Assembly (NCBI RefSeq): GCF_000142905.1
Contig: NW_013657666.1
Coordinates: 493,937-557,936, forward strand
Length of the DNA: 64,000 bases
DNA from: Thecamonas trahens ATCC 50062
Lineage: Eukaryota > Protista > Apusomonadida
Direction: 5' to 3'
The translations under genes and the position numbers were made by a program. The notes beneath the pieces are model-generated. The model was given only the letters and a program-made list of their open reading frames with translations. It searched no databases and was not told the origin of the DNA. This document shows, in pieces, positions 24,304 through 60,026 of this stretch (position 1 is its first letter; each line of letters begins with the position of its first letter).

Positions 24304-25935
24304 ATGAGTGCCAACTTTCGTGAACAGGGCATAGCCATTGTGAAGCGGGCAGTAGAGATGGATCATGCCGAGCGCTATGCGGTAGGTGGCTCTTCGCATC
24401 TGGTTAGCCGAGTCAGCGGCATGCTCTGGTCATGTCTCAGCAAGTTGTTCGACGCGCTATTCCATTCTCTCGTCACTATCCATACTTCCGCACATGCGAG
24501 TTTTGATTGGCCTCCATACACGCAGCGTTTTTTCTTGGTTGCTTTCGTCGCGGCGAGAGAGATAACCATGCTCTAGATGGCTACAAGTGCGGTCAATTGT
24601 GATCCAGATGTGTGCGAGGCAAACTCACGAGTGAAAGTTGGATGGAGGTGAATGTAGGAGGCGTATTCGTTGTACACGCGGGCGCTCGAGTACTTTACCA
24701 CCTATCTCAAGTACGAAAAGTCGCCGTCGATGCGGGATGCTGTCCGTGGCAAGGTCATCGAGTACCTGGAGCGTGCGGAGCAGCTGAAGACACATCTGGA
24801 TGACGAGGGCAGAGCAGGTGTGGCGGTCGCAGGTGGCGGAGAGAGCAGCGGAGATGCTGGCGGCAGTGGTGCGACGGGCGCGTCGTCGTCGGCGGGGCCG
24901 GCAGCGTGCAGCGGCGTATCCCGGCGGCGGAGCCGCGACGAGCTGCTCGAGTATTTGGGTGGCGAGACGCTGGCAAACGTGTTGCATCGGCGGGTGGTGG
25001 GCCAGGACACAGCGGTTGACGGGGTGGCTCGCGGCATCATGCGGTACTACGAGGGCTGGCGGATGGGCGAATCGCCTATGGTGTTTCTGTTTGTGGGCCC
25101 GTCGGGGGTGGGCAAGACCGAGCTAGCCAAGGCGATTGCCGAGGCTTGTCTCGGCGACGCCTCGGCGGTACTGCGGGTCGACATGGGCGAGTATCAGGAG
25201 CGGCACTCGGTTGCCAAGCTGCTTGGCGCACCGTCGGGTTATGTCGGCAGCTCGGAAGGCACGTATTTTGCAGAGGAGTTGCGGGCGAATCCGGCGACAG
25301 TGGTGCTCCTCGACGAGGTGGAGAAGGCGCACCCAGACGTTCTGACCGTCATGCTCTCTGTCTTTGACGAGGGCCGGTTCACGCCGTCAAAGGGCGGGAC
25401 GGTGTACGCGTCGGACGCGATCTTCATCATGACGTCCAACCTCGGCGCCGACGTCATCACGGGCATGGCCGACGGCTCGCCGAGCCTCGCGACGTACAAC
25501 AGGGCACTCGAGCCGATTCTCAAGGCGCACTTTAAGCGCGACGAGTTTCTGGGACGCATCGACGACATTCTGCCGTTTGAGCCGTTTACGCCGCAGGACC
25601 TGGCATCGGTCATCAACCTCTTCCTCGCCAAGTGGGTCCACCTCGCCGCAAGCCGGCACGGGCTGGACCTCACGTTTGACGCTGCGGTGGTAGATGCGGT
25701 GATGGCGCAGTACAATCCCAAGTACGGGGTGCGGTCGGTCAAGCACATCATCGAGCGCGAGGTCGGCAACACGCTCGCCGACGCCTCGAGCGCAGGCCTC
25801 CTTACCCGTGGGGTGGCGGCGCAGGTGACGGTGGGCGACGCAGGCAACCTGGTGGTTGAACTCATCGACACACCGCGCCGCGAGTCGGGCAGCGAGCCGG
25901 TGAGCCAGAGCGCGGCGGCGATTCTTGCTGTGTAG
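24304..25935 (+). CDS. MIT domain (Vps4-like) fused to a Skd3/CLPB-type AAA+ ATPase domain; two exons, 24304..24381 and 24658..25935
   Basis: The GT-AG intron 24382..24657 joins MSANFREQGIAIVKRAVEMDHAERYA to EAYSLYTRALEYF..KYEK..EYLERAEQLK. AAA motifs: VVGQ, GPSGVGKTELAK, GYVG, LLDEVEKAHPDV, IFIMTSN, PILKAHFKRDEFLGRID, YGVRSVKH. Confidence 0.9.
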
Positions 25936-48552: not shown

Positions 48553-49154
48553 CGTGGCGGGTGTCTGTGGTGGCGCCAAACGGCGGCATGCGCTTTCAGT
48601 TGGGAGGATGACCGACATGACGGGAGTCTTGCATCGGAGGCGTGGTGATGGTAGCCATGGCATAGGGGAGGGATGATATGGGGAAGGAGGGGGAGGGGAA
48701 TGTTATCGACATGATATAGTGGTGGGATCTGGGACAAGGAGTGGGATAGGGGGAGGGGGTGGGGTGGGCTTGCCATCATCGTTTTGCCGTGGCGTAGATA
48801 GTCGGTGTTACCCACGTGGACATTAGACCAAGCTGCGAAGCCGGCAGGATTCAAGGATACTCATCAAGACATAAGTGGCCCAGCGTTTCTGTCTCGTGGT
48901 ACCCCCCTGCTATCCCTCATATCGAGATCACAGTCATATTGACTGGCAATCATACTTATCGATTGTTCGAGGTCTCCTCCCACGCGCACACCAACGAGGA
49001 ACCACCGACCGAGCTGCTCCTGTATCCGCAGCTACCGACTTTGAACACCATCTCACTCTCATCCAACCCACACCACGACCAGCTTATCTCTCTATCACCA
49101 AGCCCATCATTCGTCCCTCTTGTTCAGAAACGGTCTCTCTTGTTACGCGAGTCT

Positions 49155-52100
49155 ATGGCTAGGAGTATCGGCCGAGTGCAAATGCGGGAGATGGGCGGCA
49201 GTTCGTCGGCGTGGGTCATTAAGAACGTTCCACTGATGATGGTGATGACGAGCAGTATGATGATGACTATGATGGTGATGTTGATGATGATGGGCAATGA
49301 TGTTGCAAGAGTATCTGCTGCTACTTGCTCAACGTATAATGTGCCAGACTCGGATGTTGTGGTGGATGTGGGTGATCATCATGATGGCCATTTGCTCGCG
49401 GTGGGCGACTTCAATGATGATTCCTACATGGACATTGTGTGGTGCAATTCGAATACCTCCATGCCCTTGCTGGGCGAACTCTACATCGGTGGCCCGGGCT
49501 TGTCTTTTACCCGGTCTATGCTCATGTCGTCACCCTGCTTGCTTCCAGTCTCGGCTGACTTTAATGGTGATGGTGTGCTGGACGTCGTCATCTCATCGCC
49601 CGGCGTCATTTCGGTCTTCCTCGCTCCAGGATCGGTCGGAAGCTGGGATCCGCCGCTGGGCAGTACGTCAGGGCATATTGCTGGCGCGGCAACTGCCTCA
49701 GAGTCTATTCTGACGGTCGACATGGACCTCGACGGGGATCTGGACCTGATTGTGGCCGACCCGACCGACGCCCTGGTGATTTGGTACGCAAACGATGCGG
49801 GAGACGGCACGACGTGGTCGCCCAACGTCATTGTGCCGCCGATTCTGGGTGTTGCACCGCTAGGCATGGCATGGGCAGACCTCAACAATGACGGGTTTCC
49901 GGACGTGGTGGCCTCGCTGGCACTCTCGCAGGTTGTGGCCATTGTGCTAAGCCCGGGCTCTACGTCATACACCGCCGCCGACGTGCGGATGTTTCCGACA
50001 GCGTACGCAGCACGCGGGCTGGCGCTCATCGACTTGGATGCCGACGGTGATCTGGATCTGGTGGTAGCGCCCGGCTCGATCAAGACCGAGTTGGCCATTG
50101 CATACCACGAGAACACCGGCAACGGCGTGTTTTCGTCGGTCATCCTCACCTCGCCGGCCAACGGCCGCCAGGTTGGCATGGTCCTGCCGTTTGACGCCGA
50201 CGGCAACGGCGTTGACGACGTCATTTCGTGCGAGGTCGACGCCTTTCCTGTTCTCTACTCCAAAATCTCCCTTGTTGAGGGCACTCCGGTCACGGGGCCT
50301 TTCCTGCGCGAAGCGTTTTACACAGCGCGGCGCGCCGAGAACGTGGCCGCGGGCGATGCCAACTCGGACGGCTTCACGGACCTCATATTTGCGGCGTTTG
50401 GCGTCAGCGGCGAGCCAACGATCCGAGTTGTCGAACTCCTGCCTGTCGCTCCGTTCTCGCAGCTGCCGGTTGAGGTTGCGCTTGACAATGCCGTCTCGCG
50501 TGTCTCGATGTGGGCACTAGGCGATTTGGACGGCGACGGCGATGTTGACGTTGTTGTTGGTGACGCAGTCGCCGGCGTGATCACCTGGGCTGTTGCCGAC
50601 GCGTCGGGCGGCTTGGCAGCAGCAGCAGCGCCTCTGGCTACGTTTGTGCCGGGCACGATTGTGAGCGTTGCAGTGGCAGACATGACCGGCGACGCAGCGC
50701 TCGACATTGTGGCTTGCCTCGCCGATGGCAACGTCACGTTTGTGGTCTCAGAAGGCCGCGGGCAGTTTGGCGCTGCAGCGCGCGCCGCGAGCGATGTCCT
50801 TGGCTCGGGCGCTGTGCCGAACGCCATGATCCTCGCCAACCTCAACGGTGACGACATGGTGGACGTGCTCGCGTGGAACGCGGCTCGCATCGGCGTGGCA
50901 CTCAACGATGGGAGCGGCAACTTGCTTACGCCGCAGCTGCTGCCGGCGGCCACCGGCACCATCGCACACGTCTGTGTCGCCGACGTTGACAGTGACGGCG
51001 ACGACGACGTTGTCTTTGCCGATGCAGCAGGAGGTACTATTTACGCTGCGGCACAGACGAGCCCTGGCGTGTTTGCGGCGACGGCATCAGCTCTGGTCAC
51101 CGGCGAAGCTGGTGTGGCGTTTGTGGCGCTCGCTCACATCAATGGCGACGACGCGCTCGACCTGGTGTGGCACGCCGCGGGCGCGAGCTTTTCCTGGTCG
51201 GCCAACGTAGCCGGAGCGTTCCCCGGCCCTGTTTCGAGTCACGCGACGCCGAGCCCTGTGGTCTCACTCGCACTCCACGACGAGACCGGCGAACGGCGGA
51301 GTCATGTGGTTGTCTCGCTAGCGACGGCAGCGTACTGGTGGATCAACGCGCCGCGAACAGGGCTTGGTGCCAGCATCCATGTCGTGGCGCAGGGCCTGAC
51401 GAGTGTCCACAGTGGACGGGCGCACGATGTCAACGGCGATGGCGTGAGCGATGTCATGTTTGTGGACGACAACACGCTGTACCACGTGAGCGTAGCACGG
51501 CTGGAGGTGGGCGCCGGGCGCAACGCGGCGAACGTGCTCTCGTTTGACCACGCCGAGTGCGGCGGCGTGGTCTCGAGTGTCGCTTGCCTCTCTGCGGCGC
51601 TGGCGCGGACGTCTGGGTGTGTGGGAGTGACTCGGCGCTGGCTCCAGGTCCCGGCGCGGGTGACGGCGCCGTTTACCCGATGCCACACGACGCACGGACC
51701 GCTGCGGGTCCGCGGCTCGTTCAATATGAGGCTTGCACCGGGCCATCCCGGCGGAATGGCGATCGACTGCGGCCAGAGCGGCGGGCAACTGTTTGTCATC
51801 AGCGCCGGCGTCCGGGCTGTGGTGGCCGGCATTGACATCCGCGGCATGCGATCGTCGACCTTGCCCGACATCAAGGAAGGGTCGACCGGGATTCGAGTCG
51901 AGGGCTTGGGCGCCCACCTCGAGTTGCACAATCTTGAGGTGAGAGGGTGCTCGTCTGCAGACGCGTTGACCTTTCACGCGCACTCTGGGATCGGCGGCGC
52001 TGTGGCGGTTGTCGATGGTGGCTCGTTTGTGGCCTCGGGTGTTGTCTTTCGCGACAACACCGCCGGCGCGGCCGGCGGAGCTGTTGGGGCCCAGGGTGGC

Positions 52101-55100
52101 AGCGTCAAGCTCACGTTTACAGACGTGCTCTTTGCGAGCAACGTCGTGGCCGACACAGTCGGCGTTCAAGAGGGCGGCGGCGCAGTGTCGATCTTGGACG
52201 GCTCGTCGATGGTTGTGGCCATGACCAACGTCACCTTTTCCGGTAACTCGGTGGCTACCGGCTCGGGAGGGTGCCTTGAAGTGGCGGCGCTGACGACACG
52301 TGTGGTCATGCACAACGTCGAGTTTGATGGCTGCAGCGCGAGCAATGGTGGCGGCGGAGCAGTGTCGATTGTGGGCCCATCGACGCTGGTGGTGACACTG
52401 TCGGGCACCTTGTCGCGGATTGTCAACTCGACGGCAGCGTACGGCGGCGGAGTGGCGGTGGCGACCAAGGACGTGCTGCCACAGACTCTGGGCGGGTCCG
52501 GCATCGCCACCGAGGTCGGCACGCTTGGGGCGTCGTTCACCATGAGCGACGGTACGTTTGGCGACAGGCTCTCGGCCATGTACGGCGGTGCAGCGTTTGT
52601 GTGCAACGGAGTGCTCGACTTGCAGCAGGCGATCCTGACGGGGGCATCGAGGGCGGAAAACGCAGGCGGGTTTTGTTTCTTTTGCTCGATCTACGAGTCT
52701 AGGTGGCTGGTTGTCGGCAGCGAGGCCGGGCACACAGCGACTGTGACGCGGGGGTTCAACGCGCGGCTGGCGACGCCGCCGACCGCGGCGCACTGGATAA
52801 CTGCGCTGCCGAGCAGTGCGATGTCCGGACTGGCGTTTGGCAGTGGAGCCGTGGCGTTCACCGACAGCTTTGGTAACCCGGTGCTCGATCCGCTAACCAA
52901 GGCATCACTGTCTGTGACCAACGGCGGCTCGTTTGTGGTCAACGAGCTCCTGGCCGGGAGCGCGTTTTCGGCGGCGCTTGGCGGCATGTCGCTGGCCGAC
53001 GGCGCGGTGGCGGCACGGAGCGCAGCCGATCTGGGAACAGACGCAATGTTGCGGGTCGGGGTCTTTCTCGGCACCAACCCGAGTGTGTATGTGGACGGAA
53101 GGGTGCGGATTGGGGCATGTGAGGCGGGCTATGGCGCGACGGCAACGTTCCCTGACCCGCTGGTGTGCTCGATCTGCCTCGGCCTTACGTTTTCGAACGA
53201 GACTTCGGCGGCGGCATGCCAGCCCGAGGTGACCTGTGGTGGCGACGCGGTGGCAATCAATGGAGTGTGTCAGGTGTGTCCGGCCGGGACCGACCGGTTG
53301 TACGACGAAGCGCGCGTGCCGGGAGCATGCGAGTGCCGTGACGGATATTGGACGCCGCTACAGCGCCAGGACGTGGCGTGCGCGGCGTGTCCGGACGGGG
53401 CAAGTTGCCCAGGTGGGGTGGAACTGCCTGTGGCGCGTGAAGGCTGGTTCCCGACGGGCGCTGTGACGGACGGGGCGTTCCACAAGTGTGTGATCAAGGA
53501 AGCGTGTTTGGCCGGCGGCGTGTGCAGCGGCGGGTATCTGGATGGCAGCTACATGTGCAAGGACTGCGCAGAGGGATACTTTCGCAACTCACTTGGCGGG
53601 TGCTCGAGCTGCCCGACCGGCTCGTCGAACCTTGTTTTTGTCCTCTTTGGCAGTGTGGTTGCTGGCGCGGTGGCTGCTGTCCTGCTCGCGTGGTGGACGT
53701 ATCGGCAGTTTGTGGCGAGCGAGAGCACGATGGCGTCGACGCTCGAGGGCGATGGCGCGGGCGAAGCGACGACGTTTGGCAAGCGGACCAAGGTTGTTCC
53801 GCACTCGCTCTCTGTCCTCCTTATCTACCTGCAGATCATCAACATTGTGGGCTCTGCACCGTTCAACTGGCCGCCGCTTCTGGAGAAGACGATGCTGTAC
53901 TCGCGAGTTGCCAACGTGGACATGTCGCTGTTTGCGACCGGATGCAGCATTTCCTCGTTCTACTCGCGGTATGTGATGGGCGTTCTGCTCCCACTGCTGT
54001 TTTTTGTGGTGACGGTTGTGCTTGTGGTCATGTTCCGGATCTGCGGGTGTCTCGCGACGCCGGTGACAATGGAGCCTATCTCGACGTGGGCAGTGGTGGG
54101 CCGGCTGGTGTTTACGGTTGGCCCGCTCTTCTACATCCCGCTCTGCTCGTCGACACTGATCTTCTTTGACTGCACGCTCCTCCCAAACGGCGGGTGGTAC
54201 CTAGACGCCGATCTGGAGACGGCTTGCTTTGACGCCGAGTGGTGGCAGTATATGCCGGTAGCGGCCGGGGCGGTGGTGGCGTATGTGGTGGCGATGCCGA
54301 CACTGTTTGCGGTGACGCTTGTGCGGCATCGGGCGGAGCTCGACGACCCGCGGACGATTCTCAAGCTCGGGCCGATTTACAACCTGTACCGGCGACACTA
54401 CTACTACTACGAGCTTGTGCTGCTGGGAAAGCGGCTGGCGATTGTCTCTGCCGCACTGTTCTTCTCGAATCTGGAGGTGTGGCTCTTCCTCGCGCTGGCG
54501 AGCATTTTCCTCTCCTCGCTCATGTTCCAGATCCGGCACGATCCGTTCTACCAGCCGCTGCACAACCGGGTCGAGTCGTTCCTCAACGCTACAGTAACGA
54601 CGCTCATCTTTTTGGGCATGATGTTCTGGGCGGACGACTTTCCGAACCACGAGTCGTACAGTGTGGTGCTTGTGATCTCGATGGTGATGCTTGTGGCGTC
54701 GGTGGTGTTTGTGGCGACGATGGCGGTGCAGGAGGTGATCAACACGCACCACGTGTCGGCGGCCGTCCGCGACCGCGACTCGGCGGTGCTTGGAACTCAA
54801 GATGCGGTCTTTGTCGATCTTGTCAAGCGGTACGCGCCGGATCTCGAGAACGTGCAGCTTGCAGCGGCAGTCAGTGAGGCCGTCGACAGTCGTAGTCTGA
54901 CACGCGGCGGCTCGTCCTCGATTTACGGCGGATGGGGCCCGCCCACAACTTCGCCCACAACTGCGCCAGGTGAGCGGGGGGCAATGCCGACATCCGAACC
55001 AGGCGCAGCAGTAGCCGCGCGCAGTGGAGGCGGACTCAAGCGCCGATCGCAAGCCGCCAGCACTACCCGCAGCAACAACGCCAGTCATCGTGGACGTGCA

Positions 55101-55238
55101 TCGCAGACCTGGACTGGCACCAGTCGGTTTGGCGCGTTCTCGTCTTCATCGCCTGTATCAAGCAGTGACGATGAGTATGACGACGATGATGCTAGTGGCT
55201 CGCGATCGGGAGGCATTGCACTGTCTACGTTGAATTGA
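49155..55238 (+). CDS. Large cell-surface receptor-like protein: signal peptide, 14 FG-GAP/VCBS-like repeats, Pmp-like beta-helix, Cys-rich repeats, multi-pass TM domain
   Basis: Repeated D-x-[DN]-x-D-G-x-x-D motifs; GGA(V)/FxxN repeats; CxxCP motifs; TM module with YLQI..WP, FDC..YLDAD..C, LGPIYNLY..YYELVLLGKR, PF..HNRVE. The start is approximate. Confidence 0.85.
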   Translation: MARSIGRVQMREMGGSSSAWVIKNVPLMMVMTSSMMMTMMVMLMMMGNDVARVSAATCSTYNVPDSDVVVDVGDHHDGHLLAVGDFNDDSYMDIVWCNSNTSMPLLGELYIGGPGLSFTRSMLMSSPCLLPVSADFNGDGVLDVVISSPGVISVFLAPGSVGSWDPPLGSTSGHIAGAATASESILTVDMDLDGDLDLIVADPTDALVIWYANDAGDGTTWSPNVIVPPILGVAPLGMAWADLNNDGFPDVVASLALSQVVAIVLSPGSTSYTAADVRMFPTAYAARGLALIDLDADGDLDLVVAPGSIKTELAIAYHENTGNGVFSSVILTSPANGRQVGMVLPFDADGNGVDDVISCEVDAFPVLYSKISLVEGTPVTGPFLREAFYTARRAENVAAGDANSDGFTDLIFAAFGVSGEPTIRVVELLPVAPFSQLPVEVALDNAVSRVSMWALGDLDGDGDVDVVVGDAVAGVITWAVADASGGLAAAAAPLATFVPGTIVSVAVADMTGDAALDIVACLADGNVTFVVSEGRGQFGAAARAASDVLGSGAVPNAMILANLNGDDMVDVLAWNAARIGVALNDGSGNLLTPQLLPAATGTIAHVCVADVDSDGDDDVVFADAAGGTIYAAAQTSPGVFAATASALVTGEAGVAFVALAHINGDDALDLVWHAAGASFSWSANVAGAFPGPVSSHATPSPVVSLALHDETGERRSHVVVSLATAAYWWINAPRTGLGASIHVVAQGLTSVHSGRAHDVNGDGVSDVMFVDDNTLYHVSVARLEVGAGRNAANVLSFDHAECGGVVSSVACLSAALARTSGCVGVTRRWLQVPARVTAPFTRCHTTHGPLRVRGSFNMRLAPGHPGGMAIDCGQSGGQLFVISAGVRAVVAGIDIRGMRSSTLPDIKEGSTGIRVEGLGAHLELHNLEVRGCSSADALTFHAHSGIGGAVAVVDGGSFVASGVVFRDNTAGAAGGAVGAQGGSVKLTFTDVLFASNVVADTVGVQEGGGAVSILDGSSMVVAMTNVTFSGNSVATGSGGCLEVAALTTRVVMHNVEFDGCSASNGGGGAVSIVGPSTLVVTLSGTLSRIVNSTAAYGGGVAVATKDVLPQTLGGSGIATEVGTLGASFTMSDGTFGDRLSAMYGGAAFVCNGVLDLQQAILTGASRAENAGGFCFFCSIYESRWLVVGSEAGHTATVTRGFNARLATPPTAAHWITALPSSAMSGLAFGSGAVAFTDSFGNPVLDPLTKASLSVTNGGSFVVNELLAGSAFSAALGGMSLADGAVAARSAADLGTDAMLRVGVFLGTNPSVYVDGRVRIGACEAGYGATATFPDPLVCSICLGLTFSNETSAAACQPEVTCGGDAVAINGVCQVCPAGTDRLYDEARVPGACECRDGYWTPLQRQDVACAACPDGASCPGGVELPVAREGWFPTGAVTDGAFHKCVIKEACLAGGVCSGGYLDGSYMCKDCAEGYFRNSLGGCSSCPTGSSNLVFVLFGSVVAGAVAAVLLAWWTYRQFVASESTMASTLEGDGAGEATTFGKRTKVVPHSLSVLLIYLQIINIVGSAPFNWPPLLEKTMLYSRVANVDMSLFATGCSISSFYSRYVMGVLLPLLFFVVTVVLVVMFRICGCLATPVTMEPISTWAVVGRLVFTVGPLFYIPLCSSTLIFFDCTLLPNGGWYLDADLETACFDAEWWQYMPVAAGAVVAYVVAMPTLFAVTLVRHRAELDDPRTILKLGPIYNLYRRHYYYYELVLLGKRLAIVSAALFFSNLEVWLFLALASIFLSSLMFQIRHDPFYQPLHNRVESFLNATVTTLIFLGMMFWADDFPNHESYSVVLVISMVMLVASVVFVATMAVQEVINTHHVSAAVRDRDSAVLGTQDAVFVDLVKRYAPDLENVQLAAAVSEAVDSRSLTRGGSSSIYGGWGPPTTSPTTAPGERGAMPTSEPGAAVAARSGGGLKRRSQAASTTRSNNASHRGRASQTWTGTSRFGAFSSSSPVSSSDDEYDDDDASGSRSGGIALSTLN

Positions 55239-55392: not shown

Positions 55393-57350
55393 ATGGGCAG
55401 AGTGCGGCATGTATGTAGCGTAGCGTGGGTAGTGTGGGTTGCTCTGAGTGTGATGACCTTGGCGGTGTGTTGGCGGGGAGCGAGGCAGCAAGGACGGGCA
55501 AGGTGATGAAGAGGCAGAACGATGACATGAGCGGGATTGTGGCTGATCAAAGCAGTCGAGGTGGTGGAATGGGTCATGGTCTGGCCGGAGATGAAAGAGG
55601 AGGTGGCGATGCGAGGCGGCAAGTGCTAGCAGCAGAGGCAACTGAAGCTGGGGCGGCGTTGGCAAAGGCAGTGGCGGATGGGAAGGAGTGGAACCATCAC
55701 ACGATTGGGTGCGGCAAGGTGCGGACGGGGCTGTTTGATGCCGTGGTGTGCTTTGAAAAGAGATATGCGGAGCTGTCGCGCGATGTGGCAAGTCCGATCG
55801 AGCTGGCGTTTACCGTTGTCGAGCGAGTGTTTGCCAAGAGCGAAGACGTGCCGCATGTAGAGAAGGATCAGCCGGGAAGCAAGCCGTACACATGCGGCGA
55901 TTCGTGGGCGATGCGGTGGGAGCATGCCGGAACTGGAGCGTCGTTTGCGCCAGTCTCGATCACGGCCGACGCAAAGAACTGCGATCGGTACGTGGTGAAG
56001 ATGTACTTGCCGCCGCTCGCCGGGTCGTACGGACTCGACATGCGGCTGCTTCACGTCGACGGGAGCGGGATGGCAGATCCACGGCCGGATGAGATGGAGC
56101 GGCTCGCGTTTCCGAATCCCGAGGCGCTGCCCGAGGCCGGGCCGTTTGGCTTTAACGTGAAGCTGGAGACGATTGACGACGATTCGCCGCTGGGGCTTCT
56201 CCATGTGATGGCGTGGGAGGGATGGGAGGCGCGGAGCCGCGACGACCCGGTCTGCACGGGCGCGCGTGGCTTTCGCGAGAACGAGCGGTTCGGATGGTGG
56301 CTGCCGCCAATCGACGGCGAGACGCCGGACTTTCCGCGGCTCGGGCTGCAGTACTATCACGTGAATGGCTGTCCCGTAGGGCGGACAGCATCGACTGAGT
56401 TTAGCAAGTGCATGGCGGACACGGCGCTTGATGTACTCGGCGAGTCGATTGGTGGGCATGTGGCGAACCTGGCGCTCCAGCACGTGGTCTCGCTCGAGGT
56501 GGACAAGCTAGAGCGTGGCGAGCAGCGCGGAGTCGGGATCGGACGGTACCACCAGCATCCGTCGATGATGACGCGGGCGGATCCGCTGTTTGCCGGGCGA
56601 AACCCGCCGCCCGGTGAGGCTGGCGGGTGCCGGCGGTTCTCTGGGCATGGGCTGATGGTGACGGAGCCGATGGTGCTCCGGGGCCAAGTCCCGCGCGACG
56701 AGGCCGAGTTTTTGGCTGTGATCATGGGCGCGAACGACGCGATGCGAGAGACGCTCGAGATCTGGGAGCAACGGTGGACGACGCTGCTCGACAAGCTGGA
56801 GGAGCGCGGATGGGGAGGGACGCTGGTGCTGTTCACGACGCCGGTGCGGCGGTACAAGGCGACAGCCGAGGGCGACGCGTCAATCCGAGCCGGCAAGAAG
56901 GACAAGTACGATGTGGAGATATTTGGTGGCCGGCTCCTCGGTGCCGACGCCGAGATGCAGCACGAGGAGCGGCCACTTGGCAGGGTGGCGGCTGAGTCTG
57001 CGGTCGGGAGTGGATTCCGCGTCCGCGACCGGGCGCGGCACACGTCGAGCTCGCCGCGGTCTTCCACGCCGCGGTTTTACAACACATATCCGCGGGTCAA
57101 GGCCTTTTCCCAGCGGGCGATCGATATTGTCAGCAGTCGGTTGCCCGAGTCGAGACGGGCACTCGTCGACTTTGAGGCGATCACTGATGGCCTCCATCCT
57201 GACTACTGCCGCGATGGTGTCCACTACTGCGCGTTTTCCGAGTCGCTCTGGCCGTATCTCGCCAACAATCAGCACTGGCCACACTGTGGACCGACACATG
57301 CTGCCGCCGATTTGCTCTTTACTCGTGTTTGTGGCCTGCGATCGAAGTAA
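55393..57350 (+). CDS. Secreted SGNH-hydrolase/acyltransferase-like protein (NXPE/PC-esterase-like), with an apparent frameshift at ~55467
   Basis: C.....LDVLGES (block I Ser), MGAND (block III), RDGVHY (DxxH) and an upstream Ig/filamin-like segment (YVVKMYLPPLAGSYGLDMRL). A hydrophobic leader from ATG 55393 lies in the neighbouring frame. Confidence 0.65.
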
Positions 57351-57453
57351 ATGGGCCAGGAGACGCTTGTCGTAGGGGTGGGGAGGGCACTCGCATGTGC
57401 GAGTTGAGCCCAGACTGACCGATGACGGGTGAGGCATCGCACTCTTCTCTCAC

Positions 57454-58314
57454 ATGTCGATCAACGCAGGAGTCGAGGGAGAGGACGGATACTACAAGGG
57501 CGCGGGAGGCAAGGATGAGGGTTACGCAGGGGTTGATGGTGGCGGCGTTGGTGGGGACGGTCGATTGGGCTCGGGACGGAATGCAAGGCGCGGGAGCGGT
57601 GGACGTCGGTGGTTGAGCAACTGCTTCCGATCGGTGCCGTATGCGTCGTTGCTTGCGGTGATGATGGCAGCTTCGGGGTTGTCTGCGGCATGGCATGGAT
57701 GGAAGCGGTTTCATGATCAGCTGGATGAGTATCTGACTGTTGATGAGATCCACAAGTACGAGCATTGGTTCTACGTTGCGGTCACGATCCCGTTCCTCTT
57801 TGATCTTCTGGCGCTGGTGGTAGCTCTCTCGGGAACAGGCGCCATCCAAGAGGCATGCTGCGCCAAGCGAGGCTGCTGTACCCGAATGGTGGGCAAGGTC
57901 TTGGCGGCGCTCATGTCGCTGGTCTCGTATGGGCTCGTCTTTTGCTTTGTGGCGCTCTTTTCGGCCTTTGTCTCGCTGTGGGGCTTCAAGAAGCTCTTCG
58001 ACTACGCCTGCGACGAAGTCGACTCGTTCTCCGAGTCCACCTGCATCGATCTCTCGCAGTTTGGGCTCGGCAACAAGATGTGTGGACCTAACTTTCGCGC
58101 CTTTTGTGTCGACTTGCGCGAGATGAACCCGAATCTGGTCTCGATCTTCTCGGGCCTGCTCCTCATCATCGCGGCGCAAGTCAACGTTGTCGTCATTCAC
58201 TGCGTCAACTACAACCGCATCCGCGATCGAGTGAACCGGTCGCGGTCAGCGCGAGTGTGGCGTGAAGAGTACTACGCCATGGCGCCAGAGGATCGGCCGC
58301 TGCTGCGGCGGTAA
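57454..58314 (+). CDS. Myelin proteolipid protein family (PLP/DM20/M6, lipophilin) tetraspan homolog
   Basis: CFRSVPYASLLA (TM1), TGAI after TM2, four Cys in the second extracellular loop with CIDLSQFG..KMC..NFRAFC, NYNRIRD after TM4; four TM segments. Confidence 0.85.
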   Translation: MSINAGVEGEDGYYKGAGGKDEGYAGVDGGGVGGDGRLGSGRNARRGSGGRRWLSNCFRSVPYASLLAVMMAASGLSAAWHGWKRFHDQLDEYLTVDEIHKYEHWFYVAVTIPFLFDLLALVVALSGTGAIQEACCAKRGCCTRMVGKVLAALMSLVSYGLVFCFVALFSAFVSLWGFKKLFDYACDEVDSFSESTCIDLSQFGLGNKMCGPNFRAFCVDLREMNPNLVSIFSGLLLIIAAQVNVVVIHCVNYNRIRDRVNRSRSARVWREEYYAMAPEDRPLLRR

Positions 58315-58319
58315 AGGCG

Positions 58320-59735
58320 TCAACCCATGACGTTGAGGCTGGTGGAGACACCGCGGTCGGACGAGACCGGCGAGGCCGAGCGCTCGCGGATGCGGACACG
58401 GACCTTTTTCTTGGAGCGGCGGCGCTGCGGTGAGGCTGCCGACGGCGGGGCACGACCGCCACCCTGCTGCGGTGCTGTCGGGCGGGCTGCGGGCTGAGAG
58501 GCCGGCTGTGGGTCGGGCGGGAGTGGGCGGCTCGGCGACAAGCTCGAGCGGCGGGTACGGCGGCGGTCGCGGTGGCGGTGGCGGTCGCGAACAGGCTCGT
58601 CGTGACGGGCAGACGATGTGGGCGACGCAACCGGGGAGCGCATGGCATGCGGGCGTGTGGTGGGGCCGCGGCGCGACGACGACGCATGGCGCATGGGCGA
58701 GAACGGGGCGGCGCGGAGGCCGGTGCCCAGCGCGGGGGTAAAGCTGACAGAGGAGCCGAGCGATGACGGCTCAGGGACCCGCGGCGCCGAGTGCGGGGCA
58801 CGGAGCGGTGACGGCCGCAGTGACGGCGCAATGGGCGGCGAGGTCAGCCCCTGCGAGGGCAGCGAGTCGTGGTGGAGCGAGACGTGGAAGGCAGTGGCGC
58901 GCTGCAGCTCCTGCTGCTGGAGCCAGGCGCGTTGCGGCGCGCGGGCGGCGGCAAGCTCAGCACGCAGCTTTTCGATGAGCATTTGCTGCTGCTCGACAAT
59001 GGCGACGAGGGCCTCAACGTCGGCGGTGTGGACGTCGATGCCACGGGCGGCCGGCGAGTCGTCGGTTGTTTCCCGCGGGCGCGGCGAGGCATCAGCGACC
59101 TGCGCAGCGAGCGCCTCCATTCGAAGGAGCATGGCGGCGTGCTCGCTACGAAGGCGGGCGACCTCGTTGCCTAGGCTGTTGTTCTCCGGAGCAGCAGTGC
59201 TCTGTGAGGACGCGAGGCGCGGGGTGGAGCGGGCGTGGCGCGACGGTGACGGCGGGTGCTGAGCTGGCGACGGTGCATGGAGCCAGCCATCGTCGTCCTG
59301 CTCCAGCATGGGCGAGTGTGGGTCGAGGAGCGGGCGAGCAGCCTGGTTGAGGCTCCCATCGTGGGCACGGACGTCAGCCATGGACGGCGGCGGGGTGGAT
59401 GCGTGGCCGAGCAGCGCACTGCGTCGGGCACGAGCATCGGCGGCGTCCTCCGGCGACGCATGGCGACGATCATCTCTTGGAACCGAGGCCAGAAGTGAGC
59501 GTGCGCGAGCAACCACATCATCCACGTCCGTCCTAGAGTCTGATGAGCGAGTTGATTGCGGACGCTGCGCGGCGAGAGGCTGGGCTTGCGGTTGGTTGCG
59601 AGGAGGCGTGGCTGTGCTTGAGCTGGGCGAGCTGGCAGCAAAGTGAAGAGAGGGGACGACCGAGTTGGATGACGGCGAGTACGACCCGTACCGCTGCATG
59701 GCGGTCTGAATGCGTTGTGAGAGGGAGTGTGGCAT
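58320..59735 (-). CDS. Hypothetical Ser/Pro/Arg-rich disordered protein with short coiled coils
   Basis: ~470-codon ORF with coding-like codon use; coiled segments EVARLRSEHAAMLLRMEAL and IVEQQQMLIEKLRAEL. Confidence 0.65.
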   Translation of the reverse strand: MPHSLSQRIQTAMQRYGSYSPSSNSVVPSLHFAASSPSSSTATPPRNQPQAQPLAAQRPQSTRSSDSRTDVDDVVARARSLLASVPRDDRRHASPEDAADARARRSALLGHASTPPPSMADVRAHDGSLNQAARPLLDPHSPMLEQDDDGWLHAPSPAQHPPSPSRHARSTPRLASSQSTAAPENNSLGNEVARLRSEHAAMLLRMEALAAQVADASPRPRETTDDSPAARGIDVHTADVEALVAIVEQQQMLIEKLRAELAAARAPQRAWLQQQELQRATAFHVSLHHDSLPSQGLTSPPIAPSLRPSPLRAPHSAPRVPEPSSLGSSVSFTPALGTGLRAAPFSPMRHASSSRRGPTTRPHAMRSPVASPTSSARHDEPVRDRHRHRDRRRTRRSSLSPSRPLPPDPQPASQPAARPTAPQQGGGRAPPSAASPQRRRSKKKVRVRIRERSASPVSSDRGVSTSLNVMG

Positions 59736-60026
59736 GGTCGCGGAGGGGAGGTGGAGTGGTGGGGGGGGGCGAGCGAACATTCTCGCGCGGAACAACGATT
59801 TCCAACGAATGATAATTGATGGTCAAAATGTGTGATTGTTGGCATGCGTAGCATGGTCAGTCGGTCGGGCTGTCGGGGGCGAGGGGTGGGCGGGCGGGCA
59901 GGGCGGGCGGGCGGCTCCTGGTAGGGCGGCAGAGAAGAAGGGCAGGAACAGTCACCCTCTCTCGCACTCGCAGGTGTGTGGAACGTGACCAAGACAGACT
60001 TGACTAGGGCCAGAGTAGGAGTAGCA

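Follow-up and report, generated by a model that had tools for sequence, protein, structure and literature searches.

The window analyzed here is the whole 64,000-nucleotide stretch at positions 493,937 to 557,936 of contig NW_013657666.1 from the apusomonad Thecamonas trahens ATCC 50062, a marine, free-living flagellate (assembly GCF_000142905.1). The gene under study lies on the forward strand at window positions 57454-58314 and encodes a protein that, judged by its sequence, is a divergent but true member of the PLP/DM20/M6 family of tetraspan membrane proteins (the lipophilins; Pfam Myelin_PLP, PF01275). The ORF list and the translation give a single-exon open reading frame (ORF) that runs uninterrupted from ATG to TAA, contains no intron, and specifies 286 amino acids. 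In assembly coordinates the gene occupies C14:551390-552250, on a contig of 557,936 bp. It is present in one copy only: a six-frame search of the entire 28.7-Mb genome with PF01275 scored 53.2 bits at this locus and found no other.

Family membership, protein layout and genomic setting

The first line of evidence for family membership comes from profile statistics. The translation matches PF01275 with an E-value of 7.7e-15 and a score of 55.7 bits against a gathering cut-off of 23.8, covering profile positions 5-229 of 231. In an exhaustive phmmer search of 1.84 billion representative proteins, 14 entries reached E 0.001 or better, and all those bearing names are animal M6 or PLP proteins: nematode entries called "Neuronal membrane glycoprotein M6-b" and "myelin proteolipid protein", and a crinoid protein that has a relative named "proteolipid protein DM beta-like". 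The identity of the Thecamonas protein to animal members is 18-28%, the best animal match being 23-28% identical. Moreover, when the window protein was combined with its three closest relatives into one profile (A3) and set by hhalign against a profile of seven animal proteins (A4), the two aligned over 210 columns with a probability of 99.6% and an E-value of 9.8e-24. The PF01275 scores form a gradient, from 114-159 bits in animals through the Thecamonas protein to 37-44 bits in its closest relatives and 17-32 bits in envB, a second non-animal clade described below.

The second line of evidence is the predicted fold. An AlphaFold2 (AF2) model built on a small alignment has a predicted local distance difference test score (pLDDT) of 77 and a predicted template modeling score (pTM) of 0.69, with four long helices at pLDDT 80-97. 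In the ESM Atlas, PF01275 clusters make up 18 of the 30 nearest clusters, and the Atlas model of the Thecamonas protein matches the "Glycoprotein M6B" cluster with a TM-score of 0.72 over 259 residues, a comparison of one prediction with another. Searches of the PDB by sequence, both single-sequence and profile, found no PLP/M6 chain and hence no solved family structure. Foldseek against the PDB gave nothing at E 0.001 or better, and a wide VIA-align search of the same database gave generic helical bundles only, the best of which (TTYH1, Z 13.1) is within noise for helical proteins.

A 19-residue hydropathy scan resolves four membrane segments (Table 1). The N-terminal juxtamembrane stretch, the middle loop and the C-terminal tail are basic, in contrast to the two acidic outer loops, and by the positive-inside rule this predicts a tetraspan with both termini in the cytosol. 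Conservation was read from an alignment of 14 sequences, animal and non-animal. T128, C186 and C218 are invariant, P62 and G129 are nearly invariant (conserved in at least 90% of sequences), and C197, C210 and N252 also reach at least 90%. C197 is part of the motif C-I-D-L-S-Q-F-G and C218 is part of N-F-R-A-F-C, both in the large extracellular loop 2. In the AF2 model, this loop forms a short hairpin between C197 and C210, with helical extensions of TM3 and TM4 (TM, transmembrane helix) on both sides; the modeled arrangement would fit nested disulfides, with a C186-C218 pair outside a C197-C210 pair. No N-glycosylation sequon is found in the outer loops.

On the cytosolic side, C136 is invariant across eight non-animal sequences, and the cluster of C135, C136, C141 and C142 is a candidate S-acylation site. 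C57, in front of TM1, is a solitary cysteine, which P0003 and P0004, two of the three closest relatives, do not have. The N-terminal tail is the least constrained part of the protein: pLDDT is below 50 for residues 1-46, and the N-termini of the relatives are unrelated to it. Among the closest relatives, column conservation is 0.72 in the motif preceding TM1, 0.71 in loop 2, 0.69 in the cytosolic loop, and lowest, at 0.35, in the N-terminal tail.

Table 1. Features of the PLP-like gene, the metatranscriptome contigs that map to it, and the environmental loci of the envB type. Positions refer to the window, except in the last row. TM, predicted transmembrane helix; aa, amino acid residues.
Feature	Position	Strand	Support
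Whole coding sequence, 286 codons + TAA	57454..58314	+	Pfam PF01275 55.7 bits, residues 55-259
Gly-rich low-complexity N-terminal cytosolic tail, aa 1-55, not conserved	57454..57618	+	pLDDT, column conservation
Juxtamembrane motif C57-x3-V-P-Y-A-S-L before TM1	57622..57651	+	Family alignment
TM1, about aa 64-83	57643..57702	+	Hydropathy; AF2 helix 63-91
TM2, about aa 105-127	57766..57834	+	Hydropathy peak 2.35; AF2 helix 97-127
Basic cytosolic loop with T128-G129 and cysteines C135, C136, C141, C142	57835..57897	+	4 K/R vs 1 D/E
TM3, about aa 149-178, helix predicted to run on into the outer loop	57898..57987	+	Hydropathy; AF2 helix 140-188
Large extracellular loop 2, aa 179-227, with C186, C197, C210, C218	57988..58134	+	Alignment; net acidic
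TM4, about aa 228-251	58135..58206	+	Hydropathy; AF2 helix 225-275
Basic cytosolic C-terminal tail opening with N252-Y253 (N252-Y-N-R-I-R-D)	58207..58311	+	10 K/R vs 5 D/E
164-nt contig, 1 mismatch, marine metatranscriptome run X1	57456..57619	+	Read/contig mapping
158-nt contig, 0 mismatches, second independent marine metatranscriptome run X2	57982..58139	+	Read/contig mapping
envB-type loci	L009:5001-5813, L010:984-1796, L011:2793-3605, L003:23-814, L015, L016		Profile + predicted fold

The composition of the gene is that of its host. The GC content at third codon positions (GC3) is 0.725, inside the range of the neighbors (0.66-0.81), and relative synonymous codon usage (RSCU) correlates with that of seven neighboring genes at r 0.82. 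The neighbors are ordinary eukaryotic genes; their products are a P-type ATPase, an ankyrin protein, a PROPPIN, a sulfatase, an AAA ATPase and a 2,140-residue FG-GAP protein. A first-pass annotation of this stretch, made from the letters alone, had read the locus as an intronless gene of host-like composition, set among protist housekeeping genes and encoding a 286-residue four-helix myelin proteolipid homolog. The absence of introns, the codon statistics on a 558-kb contig and the character of the neighbors all agree with that description, as do the ORF translation and the four hydrophobic segments. Each motif that it listed (CxxxVPYASL, TGAI with a cysteine cluster, four loop-2 cysteines and NYxxIxD) is present where it had been placed. 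The family assignment itself is upheld by the Pfam score, which was one of the checks that the annotation had proposed and which exceeds the cut-off, by the phmmer matches to animal M6 proteins and by the profile-profile comparison, and the predicted-fold match to a GPM6B cluster is consistent with it.

Several other features of the surroundings deserve mention. A 293-residue ORF on the minus strand opposite the gene (57319-58200) has no comparable family support and is a spurious frame, the usual by-product of GC-rich coding DNA (63% GC). Downstream, a convergent minus-strand ORF (58320-59795) would encode 491 residues rich in Ser, Pro and Ala with a short coiled-coil-like stretch. A gap of 5 bp separates its end from the PLP-like stop codon; if both genes are real, their 3′ untranslated regions must therefore overlap. 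The FG-GAP protein is encoded two genes upstream (48816-55238, plus strand). It contains at least six FG-GAP/FG-GAP_3 repeats together with DUF7630, and its domain content is that of an integrin-alpha-like or VCBS-like giant surface protein, here located near a PLP/M6 homolog. Farther upstream, a 421-residue ORF (24670-25935, plus strand), the true start of which may lie further upstream, fuses the end of an MIT domain with a Clp/Hsp100-type AAA_2 module and a ClpB_D2-small domain. MIT domains are usually partnered with AAA domains of the Vps4/spastin type, and the combination therefore looks unusual.

Relatives outside animals

The closest relatives of the window protein are three environmental sequences, P0003, P0002 and P0004, from ENA and Logan assemblies. 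They are 39-46% identical to it (E 1e-48 to 1e-67) and score above the Pfam cut-off. The contigs of P0002 and P0003 are gene-dense and have about 60% GC. The P0002 contig (L012) also carries a neighboring gene for a 447-residue protein without a Pfam domain, which is 64% identical to the product of C14:476494-477858 (L014) on the Thecamonas contig; for this reason, P0002 very probably derives from a relative of Thecamonas. The Thecamonas counterpart, inside a 1,155-residue open frame, precedes the start of the window by about 17 kb and the PLP-like gene by 74 kb. In both genomes, this lineage-restricted gene and the PLP-like gene are linked, though no more than loosely, and the flanks of the P0002 and P0003 contigs gave no alignment with the flanks of the gene in the window.

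The second non-animal clade, envB, consists of P0005, P0032, P0033 and P0034, proteins of 263-275 residues from ENA, JGI and Logan environmental data. Compared as profiles, envB reaches 98.9% with the Thecamonas type and 97.6% with the animals, and an envB Atlas model matches a DM-beta cluster with a TM-score of 0.71. On profile-profile comparison and predicted fold, the envB proteins are clearly members of the family, although most of them fall below the Pfam cut-off. Two genes that neighbor envB were compared with the Thecamonas genome; one had no match and the other a weak partial match. Given these neighbors without a close match, and the 52-53% GC of the contigs, envB comes from another eukaryote that is not close to Thecamonas.

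Two word-indexed protein profile searches contributed P0032-P0035 only, with vertebrates, insects, cnidarians and sponges missing from their results. Scans of the JGI metagenomes with the Thecamonas-type profile found no further relatives, and with the envB profile they found two short contigs that are uninformative on taxonomy. Scans of IMG/VR with both profiles found nothing, that is, no sign of a viral carrier. The transcript ends of the environmental relatives show no diagnostic leader. It should be noted that one additional PLP-like transcript, P0012 (L008:146-949), has a large insertion in outer loop 1 (about 25 residues). Its branch is very long and joins the crinoids with weak support; the transcript could belong to an animal or to a unicellular holozoan. 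Its source run (ERR1719230) is presumably from Tara Oceans.

Origin of the gene

The third line of evidence concerns the position of the gene in the family tree, which was computed under LG+C20 from 18 sequences. Animals are represented in it by nematodes and crinoids only. A branch with support of 87/86 separates the proteins of these two groups, together with P0012, from the Thecamonas group, envB and P0011. Forcing the Thecamonas group to join the nematodes costs 10.7 log-likelihood units (approximately unbiased (AU) test, p 0.023), and forcing it to join the crinoids costs 12.8 units (AU p 0.034). In our opinion, the whole body of evidence is best explained, with good though not overwhelming probability, by a host-native, single-copy gene for a true PLP/M6 protein, from a family that the common ancestor of apusomonads and opisthokonts already had and that several lineages later lost.

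Several observations weigh against this explanation. The AU p-values are just under 0.05, and two animal phyla cannot show an all-animal clade that excludes the Thecamonas protein. The distribution of the family is patchy, with no named non-animal homolog among the matches. A survey that included Capsaspora and Monosiga placed PF01275 in a "novel metazoan" cluster and found it in neither species (PMC5620054). The N-terminal juxtamembrane cysteine cluster is absent, being reduced to C57 in Thecamonas. The identity of the fold rests on predicted models, there being no solved structure in the family, and support for expression consists of two contigs of about 160 nt. As to the missing cluster, the Trichinella member, an animal protein in the alignment, likewise has no N-terminal cluster; the cluster is therefore a trait of most animal members and not a condition of membership.

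The strongest competitor accepts the homology and holds that the gene reached apusomonads long ago by horizontal transfer, the donor being an early animal or a relative of animals, or that the transfer ran in the reverse direction. We consider this unlikely, if by no means negligible. It explains the patchy distribution equally well, every named relative is an animal, the curated survey calls PF01275 new in Metazoa, and the JGI metagenome and IMG/VR scans produced no more relatives of the Thecamonas type. However, the best animal match is just 23-28% identical, the Pfam scores of the Thecamonas protein and its closest relatives (37-56 bits) are far from those of animals, and the gene has the codons of its host. 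It is, moreover, common to no fewer than four divergent genomes or transcriptomes within the Thecamonas-type clade, and the non-animal part of the tree also includes envB and P0011. Grouping with either sampled animal phylum is disfavored by the AU tests, and no viral relatives were found that could point to a vehicle. If such a transfer did take place, the Thecamonas gene says nothing about the common ancestor.

A pre-animal origin of the PLP/M6 family is thus the best-supported reading of the data, and not a proven one. The first-pass annotation had proposed that the family may predate animals, and this proposal is supported, short of proof: the tree position outside the sampled animals favors it, and ancient transfer and the sampling of two animal phyla hold it back. 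The claim that the gene is native held up in each test applied, being supported by the 558-kb contig, the host-like codons and the same tree position. The remark that the family is usually described as animal is likewise accurate, as seen in the "novel metazoan" label of the survey and in a statement elsewhere that the family is conserved "from arthropods to mammals" (PMC3438117).

It is very improbable that the protein is an unrelated four-helix membrane protein of the tetraspanin, claudin or MARVEL kind, brought to its PLP/M6 likeness by convergence. Such a reading could appeal to the runner-up Pfam family, Tetraspanin (PF00335), which matches residues 155-261 with E 4e-4, and to fold searches of the PDB, which give many generic four-helix proteins, including CD81, claudins and synaptogyrin. 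However, Tetraspanin scores 20.5 bits and misses its cut-off of 32.1, whereas the PF01275 score is 32 bits over its own; the A3/A4 comparison is significant at about 1e-23 over its 210 columns; and the common motifs, among them C-[IL]-D-L..F and C-G..F..F-C of loop 2, occur in identical order. Convergence is therefore ruled out by the profile statistics.

Equally little can be said for the idea that the ORF is a silent relic from which no protein is made. Two RNA libraries, X1 and X2, contain pieces of it (Table 1) and nothing specific on the 1-kb flanks; these pieces are suggestive of transcription in nature, with DNA carry-over being possible. The runs of "organism A" (X3 and X4) give a patchy coverage of about 0.3-0.4x over both gene and flanks, as random genomic reads would. 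This low-coverage, DNA-like appearance is what the relic idea has in its favor, and for the same reason the two runs were not counted as RNA evidence. Against a relic, the ORF is intact and spans the whole Pfam profile, and the pattern of conservation described above, in relatives only 39-46% identical, indicates that the protein is under purifying selection.

Two observations from the mapping are recorded here in their own right. At 58548-58589, inside the convergent minus-strand ORF, a short, simple GC-rich stretch attracts dozens of unrelated contigs of a marine metatranscriptome to a summed depth of 568; this is a low-complexity repeat common to different organisms and was rejected as a signal of expression. 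At 57547, a contig from a marine metatranscriptome and one of the "organism A" runs both show a G>A change. The affected base is the first of codon 32 (Val to Ile or Met), within the Gly-rich tail that is not conserved, and the change probably reflects natural polymorphism.

Finally, animal contamination, a recent transfer from an animal or a mis-assembled fragment, suggested by a family otherwise known only from animals, has a negligible probability and is refuted for practical purposes by the contig, the codons and the identity ceiling: the gene lies inside a 558-kb contig among neighbors of like composition, contains no intron, is found in low-coverage runs of the same organism and in marine samples, and has no animal relative above 28% identity among the 1.84 billion representative proteins, a ceiling which, together with the non-animal tree position, excludes both contamination and recent transfer.

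Proposed function and comparison with known systems

No PLP/M6 protein has a clear molecular function, despite the roles of the family in Pelizaeus-Merzbacher disease, neurite outgrowth and epithelial vertex sealing (PMC3230579). Several properties of the animal proteins are nevertheless instructive. M6a forms membrane tubules free of actin and glides along the curved edges of cells (PMC3230579), and its four extracellular loop-2 cysteines form two disulfides that are essential for its function (PMC3438117). Fly M6 self-associates, and palmitoylation of its juxtamembrane cysteines favors its accumulation at cell vertices (PMC11698045). The N-terminal juxtamembrane cysteines are palmitoylated in GPM6a as well as in fly M6 (PMC11698045), and two N-terminal cysteines have been described as conserved in all members (PMC3438117). 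In addition, PLP/DM20 has been reported in complex with integrins (cited in PMC3438117).

By analogy with these proteins, our best guess is that the Thecamonas protein may be a disulfide-stapled, acylated tetraspan that organizes curved or protruding membrane. It would reside in the plasma membrane with both termini in the cytosol, its loop 2 stapled by the two nested disulfides proposed above. The cytosolic cysteine cluster would be S-acylated and may replace the palmitoylated N-terminal cluster of animal members. The protein could then self-associate into ordered, sterol-rich microdomains that prefer or create strongly curved membrane, and such clustering might form or stabilize the ventral pseudopodia and adhesive contacts of the gliding cell. 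Apusomonads retain the integrin adhesome, and some cooperation of the protein with the integrin machinery of Thecamonas is conceivable.

These considerations suggest a scenario for the family as a whole, which we offer tentatively and would not expect to hold in every part. The lipophilins would pre-date the apusomonad-opisthokont split and would have had their first job in crawling and gliding cells, as curvature-seeking, self-clustering tetraspans that served pseudopodia and adhesive contacts, possibly beside the integrin adhesome. Animals would later have reused them in growth cones, in tricellular junctions and finally in myelin, and the family would have been lost in fungi, Capsaspora and Monosiga. 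If the origin does precede the split, envB, P0011 and P0014 would represent further surviving non-animal branches. Apusomonads keep "animal" adhesion genes that other lineages have lost, and a PLP/M6 homolog fits this pattern.

The Thecamonas protein is already present in public databases with a precomputed PF01275 label, so the bare match can be retrieved from them. Full-text literature searches, aimed in part at the PLP/M6 family outside animals, found no description of a non-animal member. The protein is thus a new, undescribed member of a known family, with a provisional evolutionary implication. Its significance is that a family called animal-only in papers also occurs outside animals. 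Given a native homolog in this unicellular relative of animals and fungi, either the origin of the "myelin" family shifts back to a time before animals, or an old gene transfer has come to light. Thecamonas also offers a minimal, single-copy system, free of neurons and junctions, for asking what the conserved core (loop 2, the TG loop and the NY tail) does, in a homolog that has kept the loop-2 cysteine scaffold and lacks the N-terminal acylation cluster.

Three known systems invite comparison. The first is that of the other non-animal sequences: envB and P0011 resemble the Thecamonas protein in length, four-helix layout and the four loop-2 cysteines, and envB differs from the family in having A-T-K-Y-Y in place of T-G. 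The second comprises the tetraspanins, which likewise have four helices, a large, disulfide-stapled second outer loop and juxtamembrane acylation, and which act as lateral organizers of microdomains. The analogy has been drawn in the M6 literature itself (PMC11698045); the Thecamonas protein, given its partial, sub-threshold match to PF00335, is not a member of that family.

The third and closest system is that of the animal PLP/DM20/M6 proteins (GPM6A, GPM6B, PLP1, Drosophila M6 and nematode M6-b). Compared with them, the Thecamonas protein reaches about one third of the Pfam score at its low level of identity. It has one N-terminal cysteine instead of two or three, with a four-cysteine cluster in the cytosolic loop instead, and its outer loops are without an N-glycosylation sequon. 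Its 55-residue Gly-rich N-terminal tail and its intronless gene, present in one copy, also set it apart, and its host, unlike theirs, has no myelin, neurons or epithelial junctions. What the Thecamonas and animal proteins share is the core of the family: four helices with cytosolic ends (predicted in the case of Thecamonas), P-[YF]-A-S before TM1, T-G after TM2, N-[YF] after TM4, and, at aligned positions within the two loop-2 motifs given above, the four cysteines of the large outer loop.

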